From NCBI RefSeq assembly GCF_037042905.1, contig NC_087249.1:42718001-42782000 (forward strand): a DNA stretch of 64,000 bases, read 5' to 3'. The notes beneath the pieces were generated by a model. The model did not search any database. It was not told where the DNA came from and was given only the letters and a program-made list of their open reading frames with translations. The stretch comes from Lytechinus pictus. Lineage: Eukaryota. Made by a program: the position numbers and the translations under genes. The first letter of the stretch is position 1, and each line of letters opens with the position of its first letter. Shown here one piece after another: positions 6,815 to 62,092 of the stretch.

Positions 6815-8890
6815 GCTTTTCGTGAAGTGGTTGTGAAAACCACTTTCAGGTGATCAAATGGGAACGCTAGCAAAGCATTCTTCCAAACTGGTTTCCTGAA
6901 CCAGTTTCCAGCAAACTAGTTTCAAGGGTGTGATAGAGGCTGTTCTCGCTACATTCCTAAAACTAGTTTAGTGGAAAATAGTTTAACGCGTAGTGAGAAC
7001 GGATGAAGCGGTCTTGGAAACGATCTTCCAAACCAGTTTGGAAAACCACCTCGCGATGTAGTTTTCAAGATCGCTTTGCCTCGTTAAACTGCTTTTAGCG
7101 TGAGGACACAACCGTTCTTCAGGAAGCGATCTTCGCACATTTTGAGCGCTGCGGTTTCGAATTTCACGCGAAACATGTCACCAAACTGAGAGCATTTCCA
7201 TAGCAACAAGAGCGCTTTAAGTGAAGTGATTTTGAAAACCACTTTCGTGTGATCAAGTGGGAACGCTAGCAAAGCGCTCTTCAAAACTGGTTTCCTGAAT
7301 CGGTTTCCAGTAAACTAGTTTTAGACAGCGTAATGAGAACGGCCTCATAGAGGGAATGGGGTCTGACGAAAGAAAAGAGAATGTGATAGTAGAAGCATAG
7401 ACCTATGGTAGAAGGGATGGGGTATCATTGGCCCCATTCTCATTACCGTCCTAAAACTAGTTTACGGGAAACTAGTGAAAATGGAAACTAATTTAACATG
7501 TAATCAGAATGTCGAAACAGTCTTGGAAGCAATCTTCCAAACCAGTTCGGAAAACCACCTCGCGATGTAGTTTTTTTTTTTCCACGATCGCTTTTCCTCG
7601 TTAAACTGGTTTTAGCATAAGTGAAGACACAACCGTTCTTCGGGAAGCGAACTTCGCACATTTTGAGCGTGCTGAACCGGTTTCCAGTAAACTAGTTTCA
7701 GAAAATATAATGAGAATGAGTCATAATATCAGAAGCAAGGGGGAGGCATTTGGACAGGATGAATTCAGTAAATATAGAATCATAGATAAATATAAAGTTA
7801 AATAATGATATAATATTCTGGAGCAAGGGACAAAGGGCTGTTATTGTCCCGTTGATCTGCTGTTTTCTTTACTGTGACATAAACTCACTTTGATGATACC
7901 AAAAGGCAAGCTATAATGCAAGTATAAAAACAAAATTAAGGATGTTTACAAGGCAAATATAACATGAACTCTTTATCTGTTTCTGTGTCTGGGCCAATAT
8001 TTTATTGCCAGATCGTGGGACGTTATGAGAACTAATCACACTAGTTCAAACTGTAAACCAAACTCTTACAGAAAGACAAGTGATTCAACAATCAATAAAA
8101 CTTTTCGTTCATTTTCTGACCTATAATTCCTCCCATGTACTCCTCTTAATCATGTCCAAGCATGGGCCAAGTTACAGAAGACATGTTTATTATTATTTTT
8201 TTTTTACATTTCTAAAAGCTACGACAAAAAAATGATAAAAAAATAGGAATGCTTGACGACCCCTTAATATGCATAGGGTGCTTCAAAGCGCAAGAATGGG
8301 TCAACTCACTAATAACGACAAATGATCTATTCATAGTAAAGCAGAACAAAACAAGATGAGGAAAAAAGAAGAAGAAATAAGCAGTGCGTATACCTCCATT
8401 ACACAAATTATCAAAGAGGTATGTTTTTAATCAGTGATTTGACTTCCATTTCAATTTAGGTATTGTACACTTGGAAGTGGAATAGGGCCTAGGACCCCGT
8501 TGTCATTACTGTCCTAAACTAATTTACTGGAAACTAGTTGATCGTGTAATGAGAATGGTCTAAGCAATCTGTCAAACCAGTTCAGAAAACCACTTCGCCA
8601 TGTAGTTTTCAAGATCGCTTTCCCTCGTTAAATTGGTTTTACCGTGAGGACACAACCGTTCTTCGGGAAGTAATCTTCGCACAGTTTGAGCGCGCTATTC
8701 CACACACTGTGTGTAGAATGCCTACGCTGTGGTTTCAAATTTCGCGCGAAACATGTGACCCCCACTGAGAGCGTTCCCATAGCAACAAGGCCACTTTACG
8801 TGAAGTGGTTTTGAAAACCACTTTCGGCTGATCAAATAAAAGTCTTGCAAACTGGTTTCCTGAACCGATTTCCAGTATCTAGTTTGAGAA
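6815..8890. mobile_element. Cluster of four copies of one Harbinger-like MITE (partial 6815-6930; 6937-7345; ~7431-7722; ~8490-8890)
   Basis: Shared aaactagttt sub-terminal palindromes and core aaaaccacctcgcgatgtagttttcaagatcgc. TIR aggctgttctc/gagaacggcct in the 6937 copy. Confidence 0.7.
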
Positions 8891-9905
8891 AGTAAGAGGA
8901 TGGTGTCAAGGTATACCTCTCATTTAAATTTTTTTATACTCTCAACAAAGTTCATTCGTCCCTTTAAGCGTTTGAACTCTAGAAAGTATCTCAAAGTTGT
9001 TGATAATTCACCTGGTAATGCTTACTAAAAGACATTGGACTTGTACCTCCTCTGTTAGTGTTTCAACAAGAATCTGTTAAAGCTAATCAGTGTCTTATCT
9101 GCACATAGATATCCATGTCTCCAAAGAGAAAACATTAATATTGGAAAACACTCAAAGACATTGACATGAATTATCAAAGGTTCGCAAATACTATGAGTAC
9201 CAAAGCGATGACATCACAAAAAACTTTTTTTTTTTGCATTTCAGCATTTGTCCACACAACCCATACTGGAATTGGAATCAGTCCATGGAAGCCCAAGATC
9301 TTCGGCCCAAGGACTTGGTTCTTATTTCCAGATGGGACATCTTCATTTGGGCCTTATCCATCAGGTCCACAATTCATGTAGTCTGAATAGTCCTTGGGCC
9401 ACGCGTCACAAGGTCTAATGAACATTTGGCCTAAGTATCATTTGGACTAATCACCAAATGGTCCAGTATTTTATTCATCTTATTTAAAGCAAAAATGGAT
9501 GAAGACTGGTGACTATTAAAGCCAGGTGGATTTATAAGAAATATATAGACAAAAAAAGGTTAGTCCAGAGATGTTTATTTACCAACAGTGTTCAGTGTAT
9601 ATAAAAAAGCGAATTGATACTGTTACATTCTAAAACTGGGCCTTTTCATTTCCCATACATTTGAGCATGACAAACATTTAAATGGTGTATGCAAATAGCC
9701 CTTATCATGACTCTGTTGTCTGCAAATCGAAAATGTGTGCGTGGTTTGTCTCAGACAAACTCCCTTTTCATTGCATGAACAATGGATTAAAGTAACAGTC
9801 ATCGTGCCAACTCAGGGGTGAAAAGACATTATGCAAAGTTAACGCCCTTTTAGCAGCTTCAGTCCTTCTACGGTCAACAAATTGTCTTTTTACGTGCACA
9901 ACAAA

Positions 9906-14873: not shown

Positions 14874-14923
14874 AACAGTGCATCTTAATGGAATAGGCTT
14901 ACCAGAAACAAATTTATTGTTAA

Positions 14924-16556: not shown

Positions 16557-16934
16557 NNNNNNNNNNNNNNNNNNNNNNNNNNNNNNNNNNNNNNNNNNNN
16601 NNNNNNNNNNNNNNNNNNNNNNNNNNNNNNNNNNNNNNNNNNNNNNNNNNNNNNNNNNNNNNNNNNNNNNNNNNNNNNNNNNNNNNNNNNNNNNNNNNNN
16701 NNNNNNNNNNNNNNNNNNNNNNNNNNNNNNNNNNNNNNNNNNNNNNNNNNNNNNNNNNNNNNNNNNNNNNNNNNNNNNNNNNNNNNNNNNNNNNNNNNNN
16801 NNNNNNNNNNNNNNNNNNNNNNNNNNNNNNNNNNNNNNNNNNNNNNNNNNNNNNNNNNNNNNNNNNNNNNNNNNACCAACTGAATAGAGAGGTTTGGCAA
16901 GGAGTGAGAAAAGCCGATGAGCAAACGTGCTTAC

Positions 16935-17172: not shown

Positions 17173-18440
17173 CTAAAGTAAAGGACAGTAGAAGAGACTG
17201 AAGTGAAGAAACCATGTTCTGGCTTTTTTTTTCTTCAAAACAACAAATGTTAAAAAGAAAAGAAGAATGCAGGATGTAACAAAAGTGCCTTAAAAAAAAA
17301 CACTTGAAATCCAGTAGACCTATGCATTCCAAATTACAAAAAATTCAAGAAATGTTTAATATTTTATGTAATTATCTCACACTGATTTTCAATACTATAT
17401 AGTGAAATGTGAATGTCAGAAGAATAATTTTATGATATCTGATAAATTGGGTCTATCACACACATGGCCATGGGAGGGGAGATCTACAACCACTTTATTT
17501 TAATCGCTCGATCGCCATCAGCGCAGCTACAGCTGAGCGTAAGAACATGCCAGCCAATCCGCTGGCGCGTCCGTATGCTCAGCTGTAGCTGATGGCGATC
17601 GAAGAAGAAGCTGGCTGATCCCGATCTATTTGTCATCAAATTTCACTATTTTCAAGCATATTTTTCGAAAGGTGGTAAGCTGATTGTATTTGATATAAAT
17701 TCATCTTTATTATTTCTTCCTTTTCCCCCGTCAAAAAAACAAAATATAGCCTCGGTCTCGATCGGTCATTTTGTTTTGAATTTTGAAAGGAGAGGTATCG
17801 CGACAGAACTTTTCATTTTTTTTGAGGTTCCAGTCTGTGCCTCGATGTTGACCACGATTTGTGTGTCACGATAGACCTTCATCCATACAATCGCAGTAAG
17901 TGCATAATTTCTGTTTCCACACTTTATTAAGATTACTATTTAGACCCCAATCTACCCCAGTGTCTCCCTCGTTTTGCACGGTCGACTCCTGGGCTCCGGC
18001 CCGCGAAACGGGCCGGAGCTCCCTGGGTTAAGTCTAGCCTAAAAAGTTGGTTAACTAGTATTTAACATTAGACCCATCCATCTTTCAAAATCAAGTTTAT
18101 TGTAGTTTATATTTTCAGATCTAAACGTTTCTACAAGCAGACCTAATTGTGGTCCTACAGTGTACCATTCGAATGGAACCCCACCTGTTTCTACCTCGAG
18201 ATTTAACCACGCTCAATACAGAATGACAACCAGTCATGAAGAAACGTTGGTCAATAACTTTGTCCCACACATACATATTGATGTTAGCATTTGTTAATTT
18301 AGCATGACAAATATTGGATTAATCATAATTCATAGGATAGGGTCTAACATGAATGATTTATCAATTCCTAGCAATATCATTGAACTGGAAACACGTCGAA
18401 TTACTTCAAAGAAAAATACATTTAGATCTAGAGGTCTTAC

Positions 18441-18510: not shown

Positions 18511-20775
18511 CAGGGCCGTAGCTAGAGGGGGGGTATGGGGGGGTGTGACACCCCCCCAACATTCATGGCAGTCGGCAAAATCATGTACCAGTTGGCAAAA
18601 TTGAGGATAGGGGAGAAAAAGAAAGAGGGAAAGAAAGGAANNNNNNNNNNNNNNNNNNNNNNNNNNNNNNNNNNNNNNNNNNNNNNNNNNNNNNNNNNNN
18701 NNNNNNNNNNNNNNNNNNNNNNNNNNNNNNNNNNNNNNNNNNNNNNNNNNNNNNNNNNNNNNNNNNNNNNNNNNNNNNNNNNNNNNNNNNNNNNNNNNNN
18801 NNNNNNNNNNNNNNNNNNNNNNNNNNNNNNNNNNNNNNNNNNNNNNNNNNNNNNNNNNNNNNNNNNNNNNNNNNNNNNNNNNNNNNNNNNNNNNNNNNNN
18901 NNNNNNNNNNNNNNNNNNNNNNNNNNNNNNNNNNNNNNNNNNNNNNNNNNNNNNNNNNNNNNNNNNNNNNNNNNNNNNNNNNNNNNNNNNNNNNNNNNNN
19001 NNNNNNNNNNNNNNNNNNNNNNNNNNNNNNNNNNNNNNNNNNNNNNNNNNNNNNNNNNNNNNNNNNNNNNNNNNNNNNNNNNNNNNNNNNNNNNNNNNNN
19101 NNNNNNNNNNNNATCAACTTCGAAGAAGGTTACGACTTATGGAGTAAAGACAACCAGTTGGCAAATCCAAGTCCATGTAGCCAGGCTTAGAGCCCTACTA
19201 GTCAGCATAATAAAAGGACAAAACAGATGGAGCTATAATAACGCACGAAGTAAGCCCCCGGTCCTCCCCCAATATAAACAAGCTTGTGAGTTTGCAAATT
19301 ATACCACAATTATTGACGATTTAACAAATACATTAGATTTGTAAAATTAGAAGCAAGACAAAGTGATGTACAAGTACTGCCCCGTTTCAGAACTGAAAAG
19401 AACAGAACACAAGACTTAAAAAACTAGTGACTCTGCAGTTGGCAAATTCATGAAGACAAGTGTACAACTTGTAGACTTGTCTACAAGTTTGCAGTTGGCA
19501 AAAAAAACACAAGTTATTATTGTTTTATGTTATTATGTAGTGATATATGCATTTTCATGACTATATACTTAAAGTGATTGCCCCCTTTTAAGGCCTTAAT
19601 ATATAAAACATTTCCAGTCTGTGTTTACGTTTGCACTGGTGTGGACCGATATAGGTACCGGGCTGGTGTTAAATCAACACCGGCGTTTTTTTTTTTGCAG
19701 TGCATGAATTCCCGCTAGACAGTCCTTAAAAATGTCCCTTTTCTGATCTAATTATAACAAATTTTCAGCTCGCGCTTCGCGCTCGCATCACTTGATTAGT
19801 GAAATAGTAAATTCCTACAAACAAGCCATAGAATGCCCCTCTTCAGGTCTGAATTTCAAAAATTGTCAGCTTGCGCTTCTCGCCCGCAATATTTCATTAT
19901 TAAAATACGTATCATGTTCATGATTACAATGACCACAACAAGTGCTGTGCTTAGGTGTAATTATAACAAAATCAGCAAGCGCTTGGCGCTTGCATTAGAT
20001 GACTATGATGAGATACGTACGCACTTCATGAATTCCAAAAGATAGTCCTTAAAATGTCCCTTTTTAGGGTCAAGTTATACAAAAAAATTTCCGCTCGCGC
20101 TTCGCGCTCGCATTGTTTGTTTTGTGAGACAGGTACATATCATGATTAAAAACTTTGCTTATAATGTCCCTTTTTAGGACTGAATATCAAACATTTTCAG
20201 CTCGCGCTTCGCGCTCGCATTATTTGATCACTAAGATACATATCCGTTTAATTGCACAGCCCTTAAAATGTCTCTGTTAGGTCAGTATACCTGGCAATTG
20301 AGCGCGCTTCGCGCGCCCAATTAATGACACAACATTTTTGCTGGTCCCCCAAATGCCGCGACACACGGTACGCAACTGTTAGCAGTAGCACTCTTGAAAT
20401 TTTAGTTGAGACATCTTGCACAGAAGGTCAATTAAAAATTAACAAATCTTTGATTTTGATATTATTAATGCATAGGGTATATCATTATACTGCAAGTTAG
20501 CAACTACGGCACAGTAGCCTTTCTATTTTGCTCCAAAATGTTTATTTTTACAGTGCAAATATCTTTGTATATCTTTGTATAATTTACCATAAAGTGTTCA
20601 CCAAATGCCACTAATTTAATTCTAAAAATTCAAATCTTTTGGCATGTGATTATTGTAGGGGGGCACATCCCCCATCAGAGTCCCCCTGTGCTCACGTTGG
20701 CGCTGTCACGCCAAATTTAGTTGGCAAATTTAGCTGGTACACCCCCCCAACAAAATGCTTCTGGCTACGGCCCTG
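18511..20775. mobile_element. hAT-like non-autonomous element (spans gap 18641-19112) carrying GCTCGCGCTTCGCGCTCGC units
   Basis: TIR CAGGGCCGTAGC/GCTACGGCCCTG; perfect 8-bp TSD CTTCCCAG (18503-18510, 20776-20783). Confidence 0.85.
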
Positions 20776-24123: not shown

Positions 24124-25019
24124 TACCATAAGGCTGATAAAAAATACCATCAGCCGATCTCTTGGAGCTCATGAGGCCAATGATTTTTGTGTCATCTTTA
24201 AAACGACACATTTTAATGGTCATTTTGTTGGTTATGATCAGGTCTAGAGTCTTAAGACCGAGATCTCCATCTCGGGGGGGGGGGGGGGGGGTGAAAAGAA
24301 AAGAAAAGAGAGACTGGTGAAATGTGGTATCATCTTTTGAATATATGTCATAATCTATCACAAAATTTGATTTTTGTATTAACTAAAAAATGCCGAAACA
24401 TTTGCTCGCTTGCTTCACTCGCTCACAGTTTGTTTTTATAAATTTTGCCCGATACCCCAGATCTAGCTCCTATTTTTTTATTTTGCTCATTACGCCACTG
24501 GGATTGTTATATCGGATTTCAATTTTTGTTTTTGCCATATTCAATGAATTTTTCTTTAATTCTTTGAGTGACAAGTTCATGCTAGGCCTACACACAATAT
24601 TGTTGTTGACAATTTTTGAAAAGAACTGTGGGAAGAGAATGAAAGAAACGCCTGTGTGTAAGTTTAGTTGCTATAACCATGGACCTATAGGTCCATGCTA
24701 TAACGAACATCTCTCATTTAGGTTTCTCCTCTCACCTTCCTGCCTGAGGCAGGCATGGGATGCGGTTTGAAAGACATATTCTTCCAAAGATTCAGTTTAA
24801 AGAGAAAGTTGATTTTAACAACGATGTGAATGTTAGAGTTTAAATTTCTACATAATTTCATCTATTTTTATTAATCTCGTCATAGGATAAAAGTTTTTTT
24901 TTTTTTCCTATATAGTGTTTTATCAAAATATGATTTAAAAAAATAAAGGAAACAAAAAATAAACGATTTCTTAAATTATCTGAAACGAAAAAAGAAGAAG
25001 ATGAAACTGCGGCAAGTCA

Positions 25020-26390
25020 GTTGTCCGTCTCAATAATACATCGTTGGTAACTGAAGCAAGTTTGCGATCCATTGCAATAATGCGACATTGGCAGCATGGC
25101 CATACACATACATTTTTTGCTGGGGAGGGGGGCAGCACGCCTAATCTTTTTCGAGAAAAAAAAACCTCGAAAGCGAGGCAATTTTTGCTTTTTTTTAAAA
25201 GTGGAATTGAAGGATTTCTTGCATACTTTAGTGCAATTTCTTGAAAATTTTCAACAACAAAAAATTGTCAAAATTTATGGGGGGGGGGGGGGGTTAACTG
25301 CCTGCCGCACCTGCCCCCCCCCCCCCCCCCCGCTGCGTACGGCCATGATTGGCAGTTGAAACAAGTTCTCGATCCGTCGCAACGTTGACCCACTAGGTCC
25401 CATGGTCCGAGTCGCAATTATGCGACATTGGTAATTGAAGCAAGTTTGCTAACATTGCAATAATGCGACATTGGTAATTGCAGCAAGTTTGCTAACATTG
25501 CAATAATGCGACATTGGTAATTGCAGCAAGTTCGTGGTCCGTCGCAATAATGCGACATTGGTAATTGAAGCAAGTTCGTAATCCGTCGCAATAATGCGAC
25601 ATTGGTAATTGAAGCTAGTTCGCGATCCGTCGCAATAATGCGACATTGGTAATTGAAGCAAGTTCGTAATCCGTCGCAATAATGCGACATTGGTAATTGA
25701 AGCAAGTTTGCTAACATTGCAATAATGCGACATTGGTAATTGAAGCAAGTTTGCTAACATTGCAATAATGCGACATTGGTAATTGCAGCAAGTTCGTGGT
25801 CCGTCGCAATAATGCGACATTGGTAATTGAAGCAAGTTCGTAATCCGTCGCAATAATGCGACATTGGTAATTGAAGCTAGTTCGCGATCCGTCGCAATAA
25901 TGCGACATTGGTAAATGAAACAAGTTCGCGATCTGTCGCAATATTGTGACATTGGTAATTGAAGCAAGTTCGTAATCCGTCGCAATAATGCGACATTGGT
26001 AACTGAAGCAAGTTCGCGACATTGGTACTCATTGAAGCAAGTTTGTGATCTGTCGCAATAACGCGACATTGGTAATTAAAACAAGTTTGTGATCCGTCGC
26101 GATAATGCGACATAGGTAATTGAAGCAAGTTTTGGGATCCGTTGCAATAATGCGACATTGGTAATTAAAGCAAGTTTGTGATCCGTTGCACTAACGCGAC
26201 ATTGGTAATTGAAGCAAGTTTTGGGATCCGTTGCAATAATGCGACATTGGTAAATGAAGCAGGTTTTGGGATCCGTTGCAATAATGCGACATTGGTAATT
26301 GAAGCAACTTGGCTGTTTGTCGCAATTATGCGACATTGGCAGTTAATGAAGCATAAGTTCGCGTTTAGTCGCAATAATGCGACAATGGTC
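25020..26390. repeat. 43-44-bp minisatellite array (~25 units)
   Basis: Unit gcaataatgcgacattggtaattgaagcaagttcgtaatccgtc and a 43-bp variant ending tttgctaacatt; interrupted at 25095-25347. Confidence 0.9.
25095..25347. mobile_element. hAT-like MITE inserted in the minisatellite
   Basis: Termini CATGGCCATAC/GTACGGCCATG; perfect 8-bp TSD ATTGGCAG (25087-25094, 25348-25355). Confidence 0.8.
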
Positions 26391-27498: not shown

Positions 27499-28108
27499 AG
27501 GGATGGTCCGGGCTGAAAATATTTATATCTAAAAAAAGAGAGTAAAATTCACAAAGCAAAATGCTGAAAATTTCATCAAAATCGGATAACAAACAAAGTT
27601 ATTAAATTTCAAAGTTTATCAATATTTTGTGAAAACAGTTATACAAATTATGCACATCGTCATGAATACTCATTAGGTGGGTTGATGATGTCACATCCCC
27701 ATTTTCCCTTTTCTTATGTTATTACATGAAATCATAAATGTTTCATTTTTTTCATACACCTGTAAATGATGTGTCTCCATTATGATGAAATAAGTTGCGG
27801 CAATAAAATAACTAATGCACTTAATCAGTTGTCAATCCAATTGTTTTAGTTCTTGGTAGAAAAAAATTTAATAAACCTAATTTCATATAATAAAATACAA
27901 AAGAACTAGTGGGGATATGACATCATCAGCCCACCTAATGCATATTCATAAAGACGTGCCTAGAACTGTTTCACCGGAATAATGCAATTCTTTAAAATTC
28001 AATAACTTTGTTATTTGTTATCCGATTTTGATCAAATTTTCAGCATTTTGCTATGTGAATTTCACTCTGTTTATTGAGATACAAATATTTCCAGCCTGGA
28101 CCATCCCT
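27499..28108. mobile_element. TTAA (Kolobok-like) MITE family B
   Basis: TTAA|AGGGATGGTCCGGGCTG...CAGCCTGGACCATCCCT|TTAA; long imperfect inverted arms. Confidence 0.85.
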
Positions 28109-31100: not shown

Positions 31101-31468
31101 GGCATCTAATACTAGTACATGCATGATGGGGACTTGGCTCTTTTCAAAAATTAATTTTTCAATTACCAAATATTTCACAGGAACATTTTTATAAAGCCCC
31201 ACCCCTCCCACATTTCCTTCTTTAGACCATAGAGCTATTACATGTTTAGACTATCTCAACTTCCTTTTTTAGGGGGGGGGGGGTAGTTAACTTTTTGTAG
31301 AGAGGGATTAGTCTTGAAAATACAAAGAACCAACGATGTTCTCTAAGTCCAAAAGCCCAGGTGGTATATTGTCTTATGTCCTCATGAAAGAAAAGTATAA
31401 TTTGAAGTAAAACTATTGAAAAAATGAGATTTTAGCCATTTTATGTATCGGAGTACATGGAAGAAGAG

Positions 31469-34400: not shown

Positions 34401-34738
34401 GGAAAATAAAATTGATATTAGACCAACTAGTTATGAGACGAAATGGTCATAGACGAACTGGTGATTAGACGAAGTGATGACTGGACCAACTGGTTATTGG
34501 ACCATTATGGATGTTAGGCGAAAAGTTACTGGACAGAATTGCATTAGACTAAATGAATGTAGACCCTGTTGTGAGTGGAGGAATTAGCAGCAGACGAATT
34601 GGTTTCAACCCGCATACCGCCCAGGCAAGCAAAACAAATTCACGACGAAATTGGCGACGAAATTCACGACGTCGTGAATTTCGTCGTGAATATTCGCGAT
34701 TTGGTCTATATTTGCGATGTCCCTTCAGGGCCACCATA
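31469..34738. mobile_element. Composite fold-back element with ~750-800-bp inverted arms
   Basis: Termini TATGGTGGCCCTGAAGGGACATCGCAAAT and its reverse complement; 3-bp flanking repeat GAG (31466-31468, 34739-34741). Arms ~31469-32277 and ~33995-34738. Confidence 0.85.
32087..33957 (+). mobile_element. hAT-like element (CA(T/G)RGGCGGATCC termini) forming the core of the fold-back
   Basis: cataggcggatcca...ggatccgcccctg; about a dozen GCTCGCGCTTCGCGCTCGC-type motifs. No TSD. Confidence 0.7.
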
Positions 34739-36561
34739 GAGTAGTCCTTGCCGTACATCACTATACAATCATGACTTGTATGCGGCCAATTTGAAGTTCC
34801 GTGGGTATAGTGATTACCACTTTTTACAATTTTAAAAAGTTAATAACTTTCTTATTGTTTGTCCAATATTGCTCAAAATTTTACCTATCAATTTGTCTGA
34901 TTCTTCTATTTCCTCTACAAACAAGTTTTATTTGGGTTGGATTCCCCTTTAAATATTGTTATTTTTACCGATCTCTGTGGCCTATAATGGGGTATTGACT
35001 CAAATGTTATTGACTTAATTGGTATTGGTCGCTATCACGATGTAATTGACGTAACATAGTCCTGTCAGATTCACTTTCCGACCAATGGGGCAATGAAACG
35101 AATATTTTGAAGCTGTTAACTAAGTTTAAATAGGGAATGCCATTTTTTAAAGCTTGCGAGTGAGCAAAGAAATCGAAGCAAATTCAACATAGTATGCATG
35201 CATGGACCTAGGACCATGGGTATATGCAATATAATATGTTCATTTTAAGAAGATGACCATGGACCTGCTAGGGGTCTAACCAACCATTTTCAATAACAGA
35301 AATCGATGCCAACTAGAAATAAAACAAAAATCAATGATTCAGCAAAATGGGCATACCTTTTTTTAGGGGGGGGGGATGAGGATTTTTTTTTTCATTTAGA
35401 TTTTCTTGGGTCTCCAGTTCCAAAACTCCTCAACATTTTGAACCACATAATATAACATGTAAAATGTGATGATATATAGGATTTCGAGGAAACCACTTCA
35501 TAATTTCGAAGAGAACATTTTGGAAAAGCCATGCGTCGGCATTTTTGGCACACCGTTTGTTTGGTGAGCTTAATTTGCTTATTGCTCAGTTCCAACTTGG
35601 CATGTGTGCACGACGTGTTTTATAGCGGAAATCATCAACGAGTATTTATCTCTCGAAGTTTGGCGCGAAATAGATTGTCTGGTCAAACAGAAATAAGGTT
35701 TATGATCATTCACGGATGATGATAAAAATGACAATGAATGCAAGAGGCTCGATTTACCACCTGCAATAAAACAAATCCGTGTATTTTCTGCATTTCCGAT
35801 ATTGTGGATGGGGGAGGGGGGGGTGGGGGGAAGGCCCGGGGTACAACCATGTACGGGCTGAAACGTCGGCAAAAATGTTGAAGAGGACCCTGCTTTCCAA
35901 TCGCTGTAAAATTTTGAGTGTTTGACGGATGGGCAGAGAGCGCTCAAACAAACAATTGCCAGTGTAATTAGAGGAGGCGGAGAAGCGGGATATCAAAAAA
36001 TCAAGGTATAAGTCAGAAATTAGGTCACACGAAATGACCTTTGCTCACCCTTATCTTGGGCCTAATCTATTTGCGTTCGTTGTTTGACCATGGACGTATG
36101 TACTCTAAACGGGCGGGAATCGTCCGACATTTTATTTTCACACATTCCTGTTTTTTTTTCTATCTCTATCTCTCTTTATTTCCCAATCTCATCTTTGTTT
36201 TATCTTATTATGGAAGAGATAAAATGACGGTCATTGCACTCATCCACATTATGTTTAAAAGGCGTGTAGATGGATGATTCTGGTAATCCGGTACATTGGA
36301 TCAGGAAATTTTATGTTTCCCGATGCTCGGTGTGATATAGCATTTCCTAATTTTAATCATAAAACTAAAATAACTTACTGAGTTATGATAAAGAACACAT
36401 AAAATGCCTATAGGCTATATAGAGGCAGTTGAATAGCCAGAGATCACAAATTTATATTAGTTTCATTTCGTTAATTTATTTTTTTCCTTAAACAATTACT
36501 GATATATCTTCTTTCTCTTTTTTCTTTGAAATTCATTTTTTTGGGTAAGCCTCATTATCAA

Positions 36562-42122: not shown

Positions 42123-45061
42123 AGTTCATTTGGATCCTCTTTTTCTTTCTCTCTCCCACATATACCCGCGTCCTAGCTCTCATCTTCTTATTTCAACCAT
42201 GTCCATGTTTCAACCCTCAATCAAGTCCATACTTATAATGGCATTCAGAACTCTGGCCTTTTCACATCGCACACTCTCCAAAACATATTGAACTCCAATA
42301 GTACAATAAACATGAAGTCAAATTCATTCAATTGATTTTCTCAAGATTTTAATGCCTTCCTGGAAAATAAATAATATAATAAAATAGAACTTCAAATATT
42401 TCCTCCTTACGACATCGAATGCATGATAAATAACCTCATGATCGTGTTGAATTTCCAACTTTCAATCACGAAGCAAGGATAATAAAGTTGATAAAAATTG
42501 CATTACATTTTGATACATTCGTGAACTGATATAAAGGACTATTATGTCTGGAACCGATTCCACATATACGGTCAAATATTTGAGTAAACCGGTTGTGCTA
42601 AAATCAATCAAATATACACTGTTTTTTATGATTGTATCCCATTAAAAATGATTGGAAAATATGAATATTAAAATGTGAAAAATCTTGCTCGGATAATGAT
42701 TTTAAAATCTGTTAACACGGAAGGTCATAAAATACTTGTGATAACATTTAAAATCAATGTGAAGTAAAAAGATTTTATTTCATCTGCTGAGTGGCAATAG
42801 ATGTGTGAAATAAAAATGATTTTCCGTATTAGTCACTGACTTTCTGTTCTAAAACATGAAATGTGGAATCAATTCAGAAAATTAGGCACATTTTGTAGAA
42901 ATATTCTTTCTAAGTAATGTTTGGGCCGTCTCCTTAAGTACCCGATCCAACTGGACCAACTCACTGGATAAATGATCTTCTCTTACAGTAAATATGTCTT
43001 TATTCACAAAGCCAACTTCGTTTAAAAAATACATTAAAATACCCTTAATACACTATTAAAATGGTGAAATAGCCAATAGGAAATATTCAAGGGTAGTGCA
43101 TTCCAAAATTGAAATTATATTTTGCTATTTTCAAAATATCGTTAATTATATAAAAAGACAAAGTCAGGATATAATTTCAATTTCAAGATTGGCAATACCT
43201 CACCCTAAGTATATAATCTGAGCCGAGTTTACATTAAAGATGAACATCATGTACCCGATATAATTATTGAATACCTGTACGTACTCTTTTCGCTAAGAAA
43301 GTAAAGGTATCAAGATCGGATATACTTGTAACTTATTTTGATCACGATAACCGTTTCTGGAAATCTACAATTAATAGCCTGCCCTCTTGCGTCGTACATG
43401 TATAAAAGTCACAATACACTTGGGAGAGCGGGAAATTCCATCGTACTTTATCATGCCGTCAAAAAGTATGGATTTTTATAGATACCCCATGAAAAAAATG
43501 TCAGAATACATGTAGTACAATTGTTTTCAGCACACATGTGTACTATTACTATATTTCAAGGAAAGTATGTCTCGTTTTTACATCAAATCTTGTCTGTATA
43601 TTATCTGCATACACCTAAGAATTCAAAGTACTCTACTTTGTCTCCTTCATAAACGGGATTTCACTTTCCATGAGTTGAATTGGCGGCCAATTATTTGAAA
43701 AGTTGTCACCCAATCTTGGATATTTGTTCCTCTCTGTATTATTCAGACTGGCTAACTTTTCTCCCCTCCGAGCTGTATTATTAGGTTTATTTCTATTGGA
43801 TCTCGATAGAAAAGGTGTAGAAACCTTACAAAGTGGCTGGCAAACCGGTGGATAATCTCTGCATGGTTCAAAACGTGAAATGAATTGATTCCACATTAAG
43901 GTTTTCTTTTTTTATAAGTTCTTTTTTGTAAACAATTGGCAGTGAGTTGTTTACAGAAGTAGCAGAGGCAGGAATGCTTGCACAAAATAGTGGAGGAGGT
44001 CCGTTTTTTCTAGTTTGCCTTTAAAACGAGCGTATGGGCCTATACTTCTTTTCCCTTTTTTACCAGACTCAAATCAAATAGTAGCTATCGGATTATCAAG
44101 CGGGATTTATTGGCAATTCAATTAGACCTAAAGTATGGACATTCAAATTGATGAAGAAACGTGATGTATGTAGGCACTGTATATCGGTAAACGTCTGAAA
44201 ACATATCATTTCTGAAGGCAATCATTTAAATAAATGCATAGGGGGGAAAATATCCTTCATAATTATCACACTGTCATATTTCGACCTCCAAATATGTAAT
44301 GACGATATCATAATCCAATAACACTTTTCAATATGTTGTATAACACATTACTGAGTTTTACAGAATATAAATCTTTACATACTCTCTCATAGCTTAAATG
44401 AACTCTTACAAATTTGTTTATACTCTATGTGACATACTGAAAATATACACGAAGTGTAATATTATAAGAAACAAAAAACTGAATACAACGGTGGCAGTGT
44501 TTAGGAATACAAGAACGACAAACGAACAAATAAAAAGGAGGAAAGTTTATGAAGAAAATAGAATGACTAGACATGAATACTTAGTATTGTAAGGCATTAA
44601 TTTGTATGATAAGTTTAGAACTGTTATTCGGAACATCATGTTCTTACAAGAAATACAAACCAAAGAGACAGATTAGAAAAAATAAATAAAGCAATTTGAC
44701 TTGAATTTTGGTCAAAATGCGAGTACGTGGGGCAAATTTCGTTTGAATTGACCGATAGTAAGCGGGGCACAAAGAGTTCAATACGTATTTAACTCTATGG
44801 CGGGTGGACATTAATCGTGTAAAAACGAAGAGACAACGCATGCGCAGAGAGGTTCGTTGGTTCTCCGTTCCATCTCGATCTCACGTTCTTCTTCATCAAA
44901 GGAACATAATCATGTGCAACATCAAGACTTGTGTGGATTACATGTACAGTAAGGAAGTAGCAACTCTGAATGAGTAGGACAAAGTTTTACTTCATTTACA
45001 CGTGTGACCGAGTAGCGAGAAATCGCAAATTGACTGAACTCTAAACGTCTATGAATGTTAA

Positions 45062-45653
45062 AGGTCAAGTCCACCCCAGGAAAATGCTGACTTGAATAGA
45101 TAGAGAAAAATCAAACTAACATAGTGCTGAAAATTTCATCAAAATCGAATGGAAAATAAGAAAGTTATGACATTTTATTATTTCGCTTATTTTTCACAAA
45201 ACAGTGATATGTACAACTAGGTGAGTCAGTCGATGATGTCCATCACTCACTATTTCTTTTGTTTTTTATTGTTTGAATTATACAATATTTCATTTTTTAT
45301 AGATTTGACAATAAGGACCAACTTGACTGAACCATATATTATTAAACAATGCTAATTCCACATGTTCAGGGAGGAATTAATTGTTGTATCACTTGACAAT
45401 GAGGAGAAAATTAGAATATTTCATATTTCATATAATAAAATACAAAAGAAATAGTGAGTGGATGACGTCATCAGTCTCCTCATTTGCATACCGACCAGGA
45501 TGTGCATATAACTTTTTTGTGAAATTAAGCGAAACTTTAAAATGTCATAACTTTTTTATTTTACATCCGATTTTGATGAAATTTTCAGTGTTATGCTTGT
45601 TGGATTTTTCTCTTTTTTATTAAATCAACATTTTGTTGGGGTGGACTTGTCCT
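45062..45653 (+). mobile_element. TTAA (Kolobok-like) MITE family A
   Basis: TTAA on both flanks; TIR AGG(T/A)CAAGTCCACCCCA. Confidence 0.9.
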
Positions 45654-45832
45654 TTAAATTGTTTTCAAAATGTATAAACCCTATCGCCAAACGACGACGC
45701 TCATGTCCGTCTCTAATCGCACATCTTTCATGGTTTGTACCAATGTGATGAAAATATGAAGATGCAGTAATTTCGAGAACTCTTCATCTTCCCTATGAGG
45801 TGCGCATCGACAACAGAATCCATAACATTTAA

Positions 45833-46433
45833 AGGACAAGTCCACCCCAATAAAAAAAGTTGATTCGAATAAAAAGAGAAAATCCAACCAGCATAACACT
45901 GAAAATTTCATCAAAATCGGATGTAAAATAAGAAAGTTATGACATTTTAAATTTTGCTTGATTTCACAAAAACAGTTATGCACATCCTGGTCGGTATGCA
46001 AATGAGCAGAATGATGACATCATCCACTCACTATTTTGTTTTGTATTTTATTGTAAGATATATTAATATTCTAATTTTCTTCTCACTGTCAAGAGAACAA
46101 CGATTAATTCCTCCCTGAACATGTGGAATTAGCATTGTTTAAAACTGTGTGGTTCAGTCAAGTGGGTCCTTATTAGGAAATCTGTAAAAAATGAAATATT
46201 GTATAATTCAAATAATAAAATCAAAAGAAATAGTGAGTGAAGGTCATCATCGACTATCTCAATTGCATGTCGTTGAATTGTGCATATCACCGTTTTGTGA
46301 AAAATAAGCGAAACTTTAAAATGTTATAACTTTCTTATTTTACATCCGATTTTGATGAAATTTTCAGCGTTATGCTAGTTTGATTTTTCTCTATTTATTC
46401 AAATGAAAACTTTTTCTGGGGTGGACTTGACCT
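45833..46433 (-). mobile_element. TTAA (Kolobok-like) MITE family A, inverted relative to its neighbour
   Basis: TTAA on both flanks (45829-45832, 46434-46437); same TIR. Confidence 0.9.
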
Positions 46434-46517
46434 TTAAGTAACCGATGTTGCATTCGGCATGGAATACCTATGCTGAAAGCGGGGAGTTAACCTACGCAGT
46501 CTGCAATACCGTTTGAC

Positions 46518-51299: not shown

Positions 51300-53988
51300 C
51301 TGGAACAATAGGGCTTCGAAGGTCTAAAGGTGTGCCAATCTATGCTTGAATAAAGACGGAGAGGAAGCCTAAATTGAATAGAGGGAGGGTGGGAGAACGA
51401 GAATAAAAGCAATGTGTGCTTGCTAAGCGTTGCAGGCCATCCGGAGATTGTGGCCGTATGAAGGCCAACCAGCCGTGTGTGAAGCGGAAAGCGATCGCAG
51501 GCGACTGCGGTCGCAAACACGGAGAGGGGACTTCGGAGAGGTCAACATGATAAAGAACTTGGGCTTGCTCATTCGCACAGGAAATGCCATGCACTAATTC
51601 AATAAATTCAGAGGCATTTCTGTTTTCGATCTTCATGTCTGTTTGAAAAGACGTTGAGGATTGAAAATGAGGTTGGGTCGATGAGTTGAGGGACAGTGGG
51701 GCATGGATAGAATGGAACACTTTTGAACATACAATGAGAAGCCCAATGAATTGTGATTGGTTTGTCATCGCTTTTTCCTCCAGAGAGATGAGAAAAAGCT
51801 AGAATGAAATATTCAAATGGATTTCCCCTCATTTATTTTGACATAGGGCATAGGCCATCGGGTAGTGCTGGAGCCTGTTACGTAAGCACCCCTGCCAAGA
51901 CGGCGTCTTTTCAAATCCACTAGGGTATCGCGTTTGGAAATGATATACCGCCATAACGTATCAAGTGTGTGGGGGCCCCAGATAAATTATATACTCCCGT
52001 CGATGGTTAGACAAAAACAAAATTCATGAAAATCAAAGCGGAATAATCTTCAACCGGGAATTCCCTGCTTTAACCGTGGACCGACATGTGGCTATTTGAT
52101 CCAATCCCGCCGCTAATGAGTGGTGGTTTGTGCTTTACAGTCTGGCAAGTACATGGACATTCAAAACCTTTTACTACCATTTTTATGGTGTGACGGCTGG
52201 GGAATTCAATATGTTACAACTTTAAAGTTTTTAAATGTCCAATAAGTCACTAGCTTGGACCTGCCCTGTATTATCCCATGGACCTATTTCGTAATAGGTC
52301 CATGATTATCCATGCTTCGGGATTTAATCTTGATAAACCCAACACATAGATAAGGTTATGGGCAACCCAGCCCCCATACATCTGGTTTATGCTTAGTGGA
52401 AGGTTCCTGTTTACTCTGGTCCCTTACTAAACACTCCACGACCCCTCGAACAATATGGAGTCTCAAACTAGTCCAATAGACAAAATATCTTTTCTCCAAA
52501 AGCGTTACCAGTTTTATGTACACAACACACAAGGAGAAGATGGTAGCGATCTCAAAACCCCGCCATCTTTCCTTCACCATTCTCAACCGATAGAGCGTAT
52601 TGCATCAGCTGAATACTGATCGCGCGAGAGAAGTGCGATTAGAGATATCGAACGTACGCCGTATATGCGTAAAAAAAAAAAAGAGTACATCGGCTGTGAT
52701 AGAACTTCACCGTTATCTGTTCTACCCATTTGTCTAACTCTGGCCCCAAGCTAGTTCATACAAGGTCTATAAATATTAATAGGCCATCACGGCTGATATG
52801 CTATCTCGTGTCAAATTGCACACATTATAGCAGAACGAACTTGCATAACGTTACCTTACACTGTGCATGCGTTGTCTCTTTGGGGGTCCTTTAGAAAATA
52901 ATTTGTTAAGGGATAATACTCATCACTTTTGAATATCAGAATGCCTTACAATAAACGTGACACTATATTCACTTCTACTAATGATGTTGTGCACATCATG
53001 CAATGTAATGTCATCCACTGAACAAAATAATACCTGTTTTCTGGGTGACTTCTGATATACACATTACACAATACATTATGCAAATGTACATCGATTTAGG
53101 TTAAATAGAGATGTGACAAAGTATAGGCACATTATTCTGAATCTAACTCTTTCAGAAAGAATATATTTTCTTCCATACATTGTTCCATAGTCCATAGCAT
53201 CATAGAACCAATCAATGTTCTTGTAAATCAATAGAAACAAAAAATGTACAAACTCGTTTTCCTCTTTCATTAAATTATTTTAGTATTTGAAGCTCTATAA
53301 TAAATTTAAACATTTAGCACACTACATGAATAACAAATTTTTGATGTATATTTGTAGTGGCTCATTTATGTCTTAATTGCACCTATTTCGAAATACATGT
53401 ACATCCCTCATCCTCACTAGTTGTTGGACAACACACTGTCTACCAGGACCGTGAGTCAGACCACCTTATTTGGTAGGGACTGCACAAATACAAAACAATA
53501 CCATCATGAAGGGACTCTTGCAGTGTCTTCTGGCGACTTGGAGACGTCTTCCTGCAAGCTTCATGAAGCCAGGCCAAGAGGCACTGTTGTTGTCTACTAG
53601 TACCCCATTCTTGAAGCCTCGCCTCTCCTGCAACCCTTACCTTACTGGAACTGTTCGGTGGTCGATAATGACCCTATCAAGCCACATCTCAGAGATGTGA
53701 CGAGAGATCATGGTAAACATTTCATCGTCCTGAACTGCTCTCTGCAGAATTCCTCTCCAACAGTTCCAGGGTTGATTTTGCAGCTCTCCTGGATTGTGCA
53801 GGTGTGTAATTGTAGAGGTCCATGAAGACCACGATGCCAGTATAACATCCACAAGATACGATGTAAGAATCATCCATAATGTTGAATGCACGAGCCTTCT
53901 GCAGGATGCACCGTTCTCATATTTGACTGTCATCTTGTTGAATACAAACATGCAGCTAACATATAAAGATTTGGGGTGTTGCTTACTC

Positions 53989-54813
53989 TCATAACGCGTC
54001 ATATGCTTCACCGTTCTCCCATCTGCTGCACTGACATCCTTGTCTTCCCTGAGAATGGCATTGTCTGTAGGCTTCGAGTGCTCCTCGCCCAGGAAGGTAA
54101 CAACATAAACAAGGCAAGCATAAGGACAAGAGACTCAAGCAAGTCCATCTAGTACATCGTAAGTGAGGCCGACAGGAGCAAGGGTCATCAGTACAATAGG
54201 CGTACTCTCTGTCTGATTCTCTTGCACAATGATAAAATAAGCTTTTTACGCATGTCATGCATGTACAGCAGTTTAGAACACACTCCGGAGAGCATTCGCA
54301 CCTTCCGTTGCAACACCACGTACTTGGTAGTCTATTGCTATTTCTGCACTTCTCACACCTACAATAACCACACTGAGGGCAAGGAAATGGATCCTTACTC
54401 AGTTTTTCTTCTCCTTTCCCATGAAATTCACCACGATGTGTCGGTGTTATCGGTGATGACTGTTCGCTTTTACCTTTAAGTTTCTCGTCAGGTTTTGATT
54501 TCACAACTCTGAGTACTTTCGCTTTACCTTTGGGGTCCCTGATCACAATGAGATCACTTCTTGGATGCCCTTCATCTCCAGAGTTCTCAGCAGATCTTGA
54601 GTTTGGCGATTCGTTATTATTCCTACCATTTAGTCTATCGTTGTTGGTGTCCACGTATTCATTAGGTCGCGCCTCGTCTCCAGTAGCTGACCTGAGCGTC
54701 AGAAGATTGCGATTACGCCAGCCTTGTGGTAGCAGGATAGGGATTGATCCTGTCGGCGAGCCGTGTACAGACGTGGGCTGCCGTACTACCAAATCTCCAC
54801 CATCTTGGGCCAT
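53989..54813 (-). CDS. spry: Sprouty (RTK/ERK signalling antagonist), single coding exon, 274 aa
   Basis: ORF 53989..54864 encodes a C-terminal Cys-rich SPR domain (CPQCGYCRCEKC...LPSTWCC...CTCMTCVKSLFYHC...DDPCSC...RWTCLSLLSLCLPCLCCYLP) and the N-terminal c-Cbl-binding motif PNEYVD. Counting from ATG 54813, the Tyr is residue 53, matching vertebrate Spry1/4 Y53 and Spry2 Y55. There is no EVH1 domain, so it is not Spred. A polypyrimidine acceptor (ttttgctttctctgcag) puts the exon start at 54849, just upstream of the ATG, as in vertebrate Spry genes. Confidence 0.93.
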   Translation of the reverse strand: MAQDGGDLVVRQPTSVHGSPTGSIPILLPQGWRNRNLLTLRSATGDEARPNEYVDTNNDRLNGRNNNESPNSRSAENSGDEGHPRSDLIVIRDPKGKAKVLRVVKSKPDEKLKGKSEQSSPITPTHRGEFHGKGEEKLSKDPFPCPQCGYCRCEKCRNSNRLPSTWCCNGRCECSPECVLNCCTCMTCVKSLFYHCARESDREYAYCTDDPCSCRPHLRCTRWTCLSLLSLCLPCLCCYLPGRGALEAYRQCHSQGRQGCQCSRWENGEAYDAL

Positions 54814-58806: not shown

Positions 58807-59390
58807 AGGAGAATGAAACTCTTGGAGCAAGTTAGCTTTTGTGAAAGCAGAAAAATCAAAGAATAAGATCAACAAAAGTTTGAGTAAAATAGGACTAGCA
58901 ATAGAAGAGTTATGAGCATTTGAATGTCTAGATCACTAATGCTATGGAGATCCTCCCATTGGCAATGCGACCAAGATCTATGACGTCACAGATGAACAAC
59001 TCTCCCCTTTTGGACACTGAAAATATACCCCAAAACATCTATTTTTGCTCATTCTAATCATATGACAAACGATTCATCAATGATATAATGTTGTGAAACC
59101 TCTGTACTTGTCCTCTCATAAAGAGAACACCTCACCTTGTGATAGACTCTATAAAAGTGAGAATATAAGTGAAATAAGTACTAAAGTAATGAGGGAGTTG
59201 TACGTGTGTGACATCACAGATCTTGGTCGCATTGCCAATGGGAGGATCTACATGGCATTAGTGATCTCAATATTCAAATGCTCATAACTTTCTTATTATT
59301 CATTCAATCTTCCTCAAACTTTCAACAATATGTTTCTTTGATTTTTCTCTTTGATATGGATTCAGCTGGTTTCAAGGGTTTCATTCTCAT
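58807..59390 (+). mobile_element. TTAA-targeting (Kolobok-like) MITE family C, copy 2
   Basis: TTAA on both flanks; 584 bp; near-identical to 14924-15507. Confidence 0.85.
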
Positions 59391-62092
59391 TTAAATACTA
59401 TTTTACAGAGACCAGTTTAATTTAGCCTTTCGATCATCAATAATTGCGTTGATTCTGAGTATAACCTACATGATATGTAATGGGAAAACTTCTTAAACGA
59501 TTTGGCGCAAGAGAGGAACAGCATAAAATCAATGTAGGCGTACATTCTACCATAGAGCTCTTAATAGCTCCATGATTCTACCATACCCCATGTTGTAATA
59601 TAGGCCTACCTCTCTATGGAAACCAAACATTCTAAAAAGTAAAATTCAGTTTACAGGGTATTACATGTACGTATGTATACATGTATCTAATGCAGTCAAG
59701 TCTTAATTTAGTACATGTAGATCTGGCATTCGTACATGTAACTGGTGGTTCAATGGATTAACTACACTGTCTACAACTTCAAAAAACAAGTATCAGAGAT
59801 CGGTCCCACTTCATGTTTCATTAAATTTCACATTGACATTTCTACAATTAAAATTATGTACAGATTCAGTCTGAATGCATCTCATTTCGCTGTATTGCAG
59901 TGCACTAATGCTAAGACAAACATTGTATATTCGTCAGTTAATTGCGTGGAGTTCCAGTGTATGGGCACAGACGGGTATACTATGTACCGAGTATCGGCAA
60001 ACCCTCGTTTATTCCCCCAATGTCAAGGAGTTTCCAAGATCAACATCAGATATATATTGCGACTATTGCGGGTTATCTGTTACCCTCACCCCTCTAATTA
60101 CCTTGCTCAGCTTCCCGCAACATCCCCACCGGATGTTTGCGAACAAAGGGTGTTAAGTGGACCTTCTAGTATAGGTTTAAAACATGGCATTATAACCTGT
60201 TATTCTGCCTGTCTCCAATATCGACCCACGGCAAGCCGAGGAAAACCCAATTGACAGAGATCGAGAGCTGGACAATACCCGGTCGTTCTATAAACTTTCC
60301 CCGCTCATTCACTCAGAACAATAGGCTAATCGATGATTTTTTTTCTTTCTATTTGAGGGTCGTTCCTCAGAGCCTTGATTCAAGGTGAATTTCGCAACAA
60401 TGGACACCGTTTTCCCTGTCAAACGTCTTGCCCATCACTGCCCACTAATCACCCAGCCGCTTGACGGAGCCGTTTAGCTTGGCTCAATAATAGATTTATC
60501 AAGTCTTTAAACCTTGTTTTTTAAACCCCACTTGTGAAAAGGGGGGTCTCGCTCGCGATAAACCTTAAGAAATTGCTATAGTATAATCCTCCATAGAGGC
60601 CAAGCGAATTTAATGCGTTCAAATTGAAATAGGGTTTACATGGAAGAAGCAATAATTATTAATAGGCATGGAGAGAAGCTGTATTTTTTTTATCAGTTTG
60701 TAAAGCAGTGGATTATCTCATGATAAGCTCCACTCGCGATCTCGTCTTGCGGAAGGCTATAATATGAAATTGCCATCATCGTGCATCAGTAGACAAGTGC
60801 ACTGTGCATGTAAATGCAATAGTGAAAGCATGGTTATACTATACTAGTAACTAGTCCATGTTTATAGTATTCATCTTCATGGTTATAGTATAGTACATGG
60901 TATGGCACAAGACGCGCAGAGATGTAACTTGAGTTGATATAACTTCTGACTACGATAAATCGGTGAAAGGCAGATTGTACACGAGTCAGTCTTTAATCAA
61001 ACGGCGAATAGGCTGAAAATACCTTTAAATTTACAGAGGGGGGAACTACCCAAAAGTTGAAGCCATCATGATTTTCAAGAAGGCTTATAGAATTTTACTT
61101 TGCAAATACATATACGCAATTAACCATAAATTTTGCAATTATTACATATTCACATATTGTTTAAGAACAGGTTTAAATACACATATTTCTCAATGTACAA
61201 AACTACTAAATTTCATCGAGAATCGAGATTATATTACCAAGAGGACGGGGCTTTCAGATAACTGCTTACTACAAAATGCGATTTATATTAAAATGATTTT
61301 GCTTTCCCTACTTCATAACAGATCCATATAACCCAGCCACTTTTGAGGATTTCGGGGATATTTATGCATGTTCAAAACAATCACGTACAGTACATCACGA
61401 TCATGAACCATTCATCATAATGATGTTTACACTGCGTCATGAAACATTACTCTTCGTCAGTGGTTCGTGTCGAGTCTACAAAATGTTCCCCCAATGTTTA
61501 AATCATCAAATACAAACACATTCGGACGAAAACTCATATTTTTCAATCAAGAAGCGGGAGTGAATATGGCCGTCGGTGTACTGCAGAAAAGTGTAGCCTA
61601 CAATCTAAAACAGAAGGGTATAAAAAGTTGCCAACGTGTTCATTTTCTTGGGTTTTCTTCGTGGTTCTGTAAATAGAGGCTGCTGGCAGGCAACCCAACC
61701 AGCGTCAGAATGGCATGGTCATGGGATGGGAAAGATCAGGTTGAGGAGTTGGGGGCCAGGCCACGTGCACAGCGGTGCATCTTGATAGGTCGTCTCCCCC
61801 AAGGGGGGCTCGGGGTATGACATGGCTGCCGATTTATGATCGCCTGTGGGGGTTTCCAGCTGCTCCCGTTATTGGCGACTCTTCCCTCCCTACACATGTA
61901 CATCGGATAATGTTGGATTATTTGTTGATTTTCGATGGAACAGGACTGGTAGTACTTTTAGATATGCAGATGTAGGTTTTTTTCAGAGATGATTTAAACT
62001 GATTGCCCCGTTTTCAAAAGTACTTGGAAAGCTGATTAGAACCTGGCAATGAGGCAGTCTTTCTGTTCACCATTCTTAATGAATAATTTGGT

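Follow-up and report, generated by a model that had tools for sequence, protein, structure and literature searches.

Probable excision scars of a P-like DNA transposon family in a 64-kb region of the sea urchin Lytechinus pictus

Gene content and comparison loci

The 64-kb stretch of Lytechinus pictus DNA analysed here (the window; coordinates below are window positions) contains one recognisable gene, Sprouty, and a scattered family of very short inserts with CAT...ATG ends, each lying between two copies of a 7-bp direct repeat. Sprouty occupies 53989–54813 on the minus strand, and its product is identical at 273 of 274 residues to the L. pictus RefSeq protein and at 266 of 274 to the protein of Lytechinus variegatus. 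When the eight longest open reading frames (ORFs) of the window were compared with Pfam only Sprouty was returned, and outside this gene the window holds no convincing coding sequence. Two assembly gaps, at 16557–16874 and 18641–19112, are more than 5 kb away from every insert; they are immaterial to the finding, since it concerns separate small sites and needs no continuity across the gaps.

The loci used for comparison were the Sprouty locus of L. variegatus (L001, 20.8 kb), that of Strongylocentrotus purpuratus (L002, 21 kb) and several other urchin contigs. L001 was aligned to 42302–64000 of the window with 83–95% identity. It stops about 90 bp short of the insert at 42191, and the orthology comparison therefore excludes this site. 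Further orthologous sites were not obtained from the Logan Sprouty contigs, which come from less closely related urchins or are of insufficient length, and the other reading frames of the window had no entry in the protein collection.

Repeat-flanked inserts in the window

The window holds at least seven of these inserts, of 10–28 bases, which are most likely scars (Table 1). Six had been listed in a first-pass annotation made from the letters of the window alone, and all six were recovered letter for letter; that annotation had also described two end types (GACC and GAGC) with variable centres, as is indeed seen in the inserts. The regular expression which it proposed found four of its six inserts with exact repeats. 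Its degenerate case at 62490–62522 does exist as a sequence, but it lacks an ATG end and is not securely assignable to the family. The 7-bp repeat is exact at six of the seven scars and has one mismatch at the seventh.

Table 1. Scars and candidate sites in the window and at the L. variegatus Sprouty locus
Feature	Position	Flanking repeats and insert	Structure or remark
GACC-type scar	7389–7414	GTAGAAG twice, flanking 12-nt insert CATAGACCTATG	11-nt left and 5-nt right stub, 4-nt overlap
GACC-type scar	24671–24704	CTATAAC twice, flanking 20-nt perfect palindrome CATGGACCTATAGGTCCATG	11 + 11 nt stubs sharing AT
GAGC-type scar	29562–29602	GTGGAAC/GTGGAAT (one mismatch), flanking 27-nt insert	12-nt left and 15-nt right stub, no filler
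GAGC-type scar	31221–31251	TTTAGAC twice, flanking 17-nt insert CATAGAGCTATTACATG	13-nt left and 4-nt right stub
Scar absent from the first-pass list	42191–42214	TTTCAAC twice, flanking 10-nt insert CATGTCCATG	4 + 7 nt stubs, 1-nt overlap
GACC-type scar	52270–52311	ATTATCC twice, flanking 28-nt insert	12-nt stub, TCG, 13-nt stub
GAGC-type scar	59544–59581	ATTCTAC twice, flanking 24-nt insert	14 + 14 nt stubs sharing TTAA, one substitution
Degenerate candidate	62490–62522	TCATAAC twice, flanking CATGGTCCATAATAACCAG, not ending in ATG	Membership uncertain
Possible decayed scar CATGGACCTAGGACCATG	35201–35218	No matching flanking 7-mer	10 + 10 nt stubs sharing TA, one substitution; not confirmed
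Empty target in L. pictus	52006–52012	GTTAGAC	L. variegatus counterpart carries a scar between two copies of this 7-mer
L. variegatus scar	L001:12674–12717	GTCTAAC twice, flanking 30-nt insert CATAGAGCTATTCTCTGTAATAGCTCCATG	

In the window an exact 7-bp repeat flanks a CAT...ATG insert of 6–60 bp eight times, whereas 200 shuffles of it that preserve dinucleotides contain 0.155 such arrangements on average and 3 at most. This enrichment of about 50-fold answers the comparison with shuffled sequence which had been proposed as a check in the first-pass annotation. Six of the eight sites belong to the family; the member at 29562 is outside the count owing to the mismatch in its repeat, and the other two (1671 and 27726) are copies of one unrelated repeat. 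A second control used the real sequence and 64 pairs of a trinucleotide with its reverse complement as ends; CAT...ATG alone stood out (8 against a mean of 0.4), and the remaining matches fell within tandem arrays. Around CAT...ATG inserts the window has no direct repeats of 8 or 9 bp, and none of 5 or 6 bp that belongs to this family.

The two unrelated copies, at 1671–1714 and 27726–27791, are parts of one interspersed repeat which carries ATGAAAT-CATAA...TTATG-ATGAAAT. Their inserts, of 30 nt and 52 nt, are deletion variants of one another and stand outside the CATRGASC family. Either this is a nested insertion of some age, multiplied together with the repeat around it, or it is a coincidence.

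Orthologous sites in other sea urchins

Where L. pictus has the 59544 scar, the L. variegatus sequence runs from one TTTCTAC straight into CATACC, and the site there is empty. The reverse case is the L. variegatus scar at L001:12674–12717, the counterpart of which is a single GTTAGAC without insert in L. pictus, in S. purpuratus and in two further urchin contigs. Because both sites are empty and retain one 7-mer, the inserts are lineage-specific insertions that duplicated their target. This is the opposite of orthologous loci carrying both 7-mers and no insert, the outcome that the first-pass annotation had named beforehand as refuting its reading. Judging from these alignments, both Lytechinus lineages have received insertions of the family, each with a duplicated target, since their separation.

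Insertions of the family were probably also made before that split. The degenerate 62490 site is found in both Lytechinus species in differing decayed forms, the longer one in L. variegatus, and since an altered form is present in the latter the site is older than the divergence of the two species. The 52270 scar lies inside a stretch of about 100 bp which is absent from L. variegatus and unalignable in the outgroups, and there the comparison is uninformative. Two other L. variegatus candidates, L001:6594 and L001:14550, were rejected as scars, being common to both species and without family ends.

Downstream of Sprouty, the 52270 scar is 1.7 kb from the stop codon. Both it and the L. variegatus scar (opposite 52006–52012 of L. 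pictus) are within 2 kb of that codon on its downstream side, in a region which is 88–95% identical between the two species.

Structure of the inserts

The eight Lytechinus inserts measure 10, 12, 17, 20, 24, 27, 28 and 30 nt. Every one of them starts and finishes with pieces of a single end sequence, CATRGASCTATTA, in which S is C at four sites and G at four, and there are at least two subfamilies which differ at position 7 of the end (CATRGACCTATTA... and CATRGAGCTATTA...). The ends are common to all, and the centres differ in all eight. The yardstick for the stubs was an 18-mer end, CATRGASCTATTAACTAG, deduced from the window together with its metagenome relatives. By this measure five inserts (24671, 29562, 31221, 7389 and 42191) are made up of two stubs alone, overlapping by 0–4 nt, and three carry a filler of 3–5 nt, the 59544 insert being among these when scored without mismatches; in the other two, stubs of 12–13 nt stand around 3 or 5 nt (TCG, CTCTG). 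The microhomologies at the junctions are AT, TA and TTAA, and each junction is different. All stubs start with CATG or CATA, and they reach 13–15 nt.

The duplicated target is itself palindromic at its edges. Symmetrised over the eight sites it reads G (10/16), T (15/16), N, N, N, A (15/16), C (10/16), and T is found at position 2 at eight of eight sites, for which the chance probability is 7e-5 in what is a small sample.

Since these 10–30 bp palindromes have terminal inverted repeats, perfect 7-bp duplications and lineage-specific insertion, and no longer element lies nearby, they might themselves be mobile, as minimal non-autonomous units of two terminal repeats moved in trans; very small mobile units had been the alternative offered in the first-pass annotation. 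A moving unit would bring its centre along, however, and the centres of all eight Lytechinus inserts and of three repeat-flanked metagenome inserts described below differ, by junction structure and not by point substitutions. What characterises miniature inverted-repeat transposable elements, many copies at different loci with one common internal sequence, is thus absent among them. Some inserts, moreover, are too short or too lopsided to contain two functional ends (CATGTCCATG, and the insert with stubs of 13 + 4 nt). In Drosophila the transposition of P requires internal transposase-binding sites. Such sites are located beyond the terminal repeats of the element (PMC7776569). The differing centres and the short or lopsided inserts disfavour self-mobile palindromes, which we consider improbable.

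The lengths of the inserts bear upon another possibility, that they are extreme internal deletions made in place by interrupted gap repair from a sister copy, in which the outermost end bases were kept. The repair products of Drosophila P come mostly from incomplete synthesis followed by end joining (PMC2895639), and the fillers of 3–5 nt could be traces of such synthesis. Gap repair nevertheless predicts a broad range of lengths, from tens to hundreds of bases, whereas no insert between 31 nt and 30 kb was found in the window, L001 or L002 by scans that allowed up to 30 kb. All inserts are therein below twice 17 nt, the ceiling which had been expected for footprints of a 17-nt cut, and the stubs end at about 13–15 nt, as they should if overhangs alone survive. 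Interrupted gap repair likewise seems improbable to us.

Search for a parent element

Paired CAT/ATG ends with exact or near-exact 7-mers, sought up to 30 kb apart, gave small inserts only in the window, which bears out the initial statement that the parent element is missing from it. All good matches to a 13-mer of the end in the window fall within scars. The 18-mer end had no match in viral_contigs. In the literature searched these end sequences appeared only as unrelated primers, and a search there for publications that treat P elements or excision scars of sea urchins found none.

Related sequences in metagenomes and bacteria

Contigs of the Joint Genome Institute (JGI) metagenomes were scanned with the pattern CATGGASCTATT, 0–10 bases, AATAGSTCYATG, which could not return inserts longer than 34 nt. 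Six contigs were obtained, and three of these look eukaryotic (one has an ORF of a long interspersed nuclear element, or LINE, and one an EGF exon; G+C 34–42%) and have exact flanking repeats. On L018 CTAGGCC repeats flank a 32-nt insert, and the homologues of the LINE fragment on this contig are metagenome proteins. GTTTAAA repeats on L019 flank a 33-nt insert with one GAGC and one GACC end, and an exact 8-bp repeat, GATAACAT, flanks a 29-nt insert on L016. The L018 insert equals two 17-nt overhangs, CATGGAGCTATTAACTA, joined at their terminal TA, bar one substitution; lengths of 32 and 33 nt fit 17 + 17 - 2, in a search limited to 34 nt.

L019 has a second scar, of a related family, only 24 bp from the first (141–186; GTAATTC-CATGGATCTATCAACTAGACAATGAATCCATG-GTAATAC, the insert beginning CATGGATCTATCAACTAG). 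The closeness of the two recalls the local hopping that is known for P elements. Another contig, L015, has at 2351–2417 (the same locus as L017:1381–1447) three tandem 19-nt units (CATGGAGCTATTCTAACAA) similar to an element end, of which the third is closed by AATAGCTCCATG, and these have no flanking repeat. Templated copying during a complex repair could have produced this triplication, or it could be unrelated.

The same pattern matched 21 times in 185,579 bacterial and archaeal genomes, and 20 of the matches fall on a single hairpin locus that is conserved in Latescibacterota and Gemmatimonadota. It is a 28-nt perfect palindrome, CATGGAGCTATTGGCCAATAGCTCCATG, the flanks of which are also conserved, and it is present in about 20 genomes (L020–L040) and on metagenome contig L014; presumably it is a conserved hairpin. 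Its arms coincide with the GAGC-type stubs of the urchins. A near-identical palindrome maintained in so many bacteria raises the question of whether the urchin inserts, too, are chance or functional hairpins (for example regulatory palindromes) unrelated to transposition. A flanking direct repeat was found at none of the 21 bacterial matches, however, as against all seven window sites, and the single-7-mer empty sites of the sister species refute such an origin for the window sites, which the enrichment over shuffles also opposes; we find it scarcely credible. Because bacterial hairpins occur without the repeat, the palindrome alone is not diagnostic and the flanking repeat is.

Origin of the inserts

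The inserts are very probably excision scars. Taken as a whole, it is probable that they are donor-site scars of a family of cut-and-paste DNA transposons, most likely of the P/1360/Galileo superfamily, and membership of the transposon in the P superfamily, considered by itself, we regard as likely. A full element would insert at a GTNNNAC-like target and duplicate 7 bp of it. When the element was later excised, its transposase would cut the 3' strand at the border of the element but the other strand far within the terminal repeat, so that both flanks kept end sequence as a 3' overhang. The overhangs would then be sealed by end joining, the microhomology-mediated kind included, into the order target copy, stub, junction, stub, target copy. 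Insertion, target duplication and the diversity of the junctions are shown by the sites themselves, and from their features we infer excision, the staggered cut and the superfamily; a long stagger is implied, the exact length of which is not fixed by inserts of 10–30 nt. If a modest number of elements hopped repeatedly, scars would accumulate while the element count stayed low, and this would explain seven scars and zero elements in 64 kb.

Much of this has a counterpart in what is established for the superfamily. The two cuts of P transposase, one at the boundary of the element and one on the opposite strand 17 nt into the terminal repeat, leave the donor flanks of an excised P element in Drosophila with 17-nt 3' overhangs (PMC7776569, PMC2895639, PMC10983969). 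The overhangs are end-joined, in many cases through microhomology and in many with the addition of short templated inserts, to give junctions (Table 1 of PMC2895639) of the form target-CATGATGAAATAACAT-insert-ATGTTATTTCATCATG-target, for example with the insert TTAACATAAC. The P end of Drosophila, CATGATGAAATAACATA, begins with CATG (PMC2895639), and that of zebrafish Pdre2, CATACCTGTCAAC, which has a 13-bp terminal repeat, begins with CATA (PMC10983969). Duplications of 7 bp are made by 1360 and Galileo (PMC3698922), the target consensus of Galileo being GTANTAC (PMC4168063), and P-transposase (THAP9) homologues have been reported in sea urchins (PMC10983969). The window scars have a duplication within the 7–8 bp range, CAT terminal repeats and a palindromic GT...AC target. 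The facts called upon in the first-pass annotation (CAT ends, the 17-nt stagger, the 7-bp duplication and GTANTAC target of Galileo) agree with these papers. Its reading of the inserts as footprints is supported by the empty sites and the enrichment, and their assignment to the superfamily by four concordant signatures of ends and target.

That no transposase was found, and hence no tie to P by homology, is the point from which one might argue for the excision scars of a non-P transposon, perhaps of an uncharacterised or little-studied superfamily, that cuts deep inside its terminal repeats and makes 7-bp duplications, a Dada-like element for instance; many eukaryotic superfamilies, furthermore, are without characterised cleavage chemistry. 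Four independent matches to P/1360/Galileo (7–8 bp duplication, CAT ends, GT...AC target and long stubs) oppose this, and the superfamilies with known chemistry leave scars of other kinds. To our knowledge, P transposase is the only well-studied eukaryotic transposase that leaves so much of its ends behind. The hAT, Transib and MULE transposases form hairpins on the flanks, from which inverted copies of flank bases result, and their duplications are of 8, 5 and 9–10 bp, respectively. Their footprints were ruled out, as the inserts share one conserved sequence unrelated to the flanks and the duplication is of 7 bp. Scars of Tc1/mariner have 2–3 nt between TA, and piggyBac is excised precisely at TTAA. 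Footprints of Tc1/mariner were likewise ruled out by the varied 7-bp duplications and by stubs of up to 15 nt. All in all, scars of a non-P transposon are unlikely.

Several points weigh against an origin from a P-type transposon. Neither element nor transposase was found, and for this reason the superfamily is inferred from end and target features: searches of the window, the 21 kb each of L. variegatus and S. purpuratus and the other fetched contigs turned up neither long nor short elements with these ends; a long element with these termini that encodes a THAP/P transposase was absent from about 150 kb of eukaryotic DNA; and six-frame translations of the window and the eukaryotic loci gave no THAP-like motif. 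Canonical P elements duplicate 8 bp, not 7. The longest stub common to the Lytechinus inserts is 13–15 nt, not 17. The closest approach here to a measurement of the stagger is the L018 insert, which came from a search with a ceiling of 34 nt set by the pattern itself. The sample comprises eight Lytechinus sites, a small number, and lineage specificity was checked at two sites only, against the sister species and outgroups.

Comparison with known systems

The P footprints of Drosophila (Chan, Yu and McVey 2010, PMC2895639; reviewed in PMC7776569) have the same order of target, stub, microhomology or short insert, stub and target, with stubs that start with CATG, junctions at short palindromic microhomologies and a length under twice the overhang. 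The inserts described here differ from them in the 7-bp instead of 8-bp duplication, in the end sequence and in the longest stubs, which are of 13–15 nt; they are, besides, natural, abundant and lineage-specific alleles of an echinoderm, whereas those of Drosophila were recovered in a laboratory assay. With Galileo and 1360 they share duplications of 7 bp (occasionally 8) and a palindromic target with GT...AC edges (PMC3698922, PMC4168063). The inner part of the target is GTWNWAC here, with T favoured at position 3, as opposed to GTANTAC in Galileo, and there is no sign, in a comparison made from scars alone, of long fold-back terminal repeats.

Zebrafish Pdre2/THAP9 is likewise a deuterostome system, and the CATA with which the 13-bp repeats of Pdre2 begin is matched by the CATA or CATG of the common 13-nt end. 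Its duplications, on the other hand, are of 8 bp and its end sequence is otherwise unrelated (PMC10983969); the zebrafish genome moreover has Pdre copies with bodies, where we see scars only. The excision footprints found by comparing Asian with African rice resemble ours in being natural and species-specific, in having been detected between close species and in their frequent filler or deletions (PMC4423477). Their sources are Mariner, Harbinger, Mutator and CACTA elements, the ends of which seldom survive in them, whereas both ends are consistently kept here. In rice insertions are two to eight times as numerous as excisions wherever the counts for a superfamily are usable (PMC4423477), as against seven scars to zero elements in the window.

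Significance

P-type footprints are textbook knowledge from experiments in Drosophila. For other superfamilies, a catalogue of natural footprints exists from rice (PMC4423477). What is new is the echinoderm host, an end sequence absent from the literature searched, and the balance of seven scars against no element in 64 kb, with one more scar in the 21-kb L. variegatus locus. It is conceivable, though doubtful, that a P-type family is active now or was so very recently in Lytechinus, and hops so frequently that scars far outnumber its copies. In a family so active, excision scars would be an important cause of small insertions in urchin genomes, and one that goes unannotated. The occurrence of the same ends between 7- or 8-bp duplications on eukaryotic contigs of unrelated metagenomes would then point either to horizontal transfer among marine animals or to transposase-binding ends that are conserved with unusual strength.

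The density is about one scar per 9 kb in the window and, if the window is typical, a genome would have about 100,000 of them. Inserts of 10–30 bp are invisible to standard repeat annotation, so that small insertions and deletions and perfect palindromes go unannotated. If our interpretation is true, urchin genomes would hold a dense record of cut-and-paste transposition. Each scar would represent one insertion and one excision, its junction showing how breaks are repaired in the germ line (microhomology, short fillers), and the stub lengths would report on the cut geometry of the transposase outside Drosophila. A P-like transposon would have been mobile after L. pictus and L. variegatus separated. 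An endogenous mobile element would be of practical interest too, for L. pictus is under development as a genetic model (PMC11361634).

Other repeated sequences in the window

Larger elements in the window were considered as parents of the scars and rejected. A fold-back element of 3.27 kb at 31466–34741 has ends (TATGGTGGCCC) unrelated to those of the family. Its ends read TATGGTGGCCCTGAAGG..., and it contains nested inverted repeats of 200 nt with 88–97% identity; the 31221 scar lies 215 bp before it and the possible scar at 35201 lies 460 bp after it.

Two elements of about 600 bp (45058–45659 and 45828–46440) and an insertion at 58807–59391 were set aside as TTAA-flanked and of another superfamily. 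Further TTAA-flanked copies of about 600 bp are situated at L001:8314–8920 and 17237–17859. The 600-bp copies have the ends AGGTCAAGTCCACCCC...GGGGTGGACTTGACCT, and those of the 58807–59391 insertion are different (AGGAGAATGAAAC...). As some copies occur in one Lytechinus species only, a TTAA-targeting family has been recently mobile too.

Finally, 25411–26388 is an array of about 22 copies of a 44–45-bp unit (78–89% matches) with a higher-order period of 262 bp, and to it are due several long spurious reading frames.

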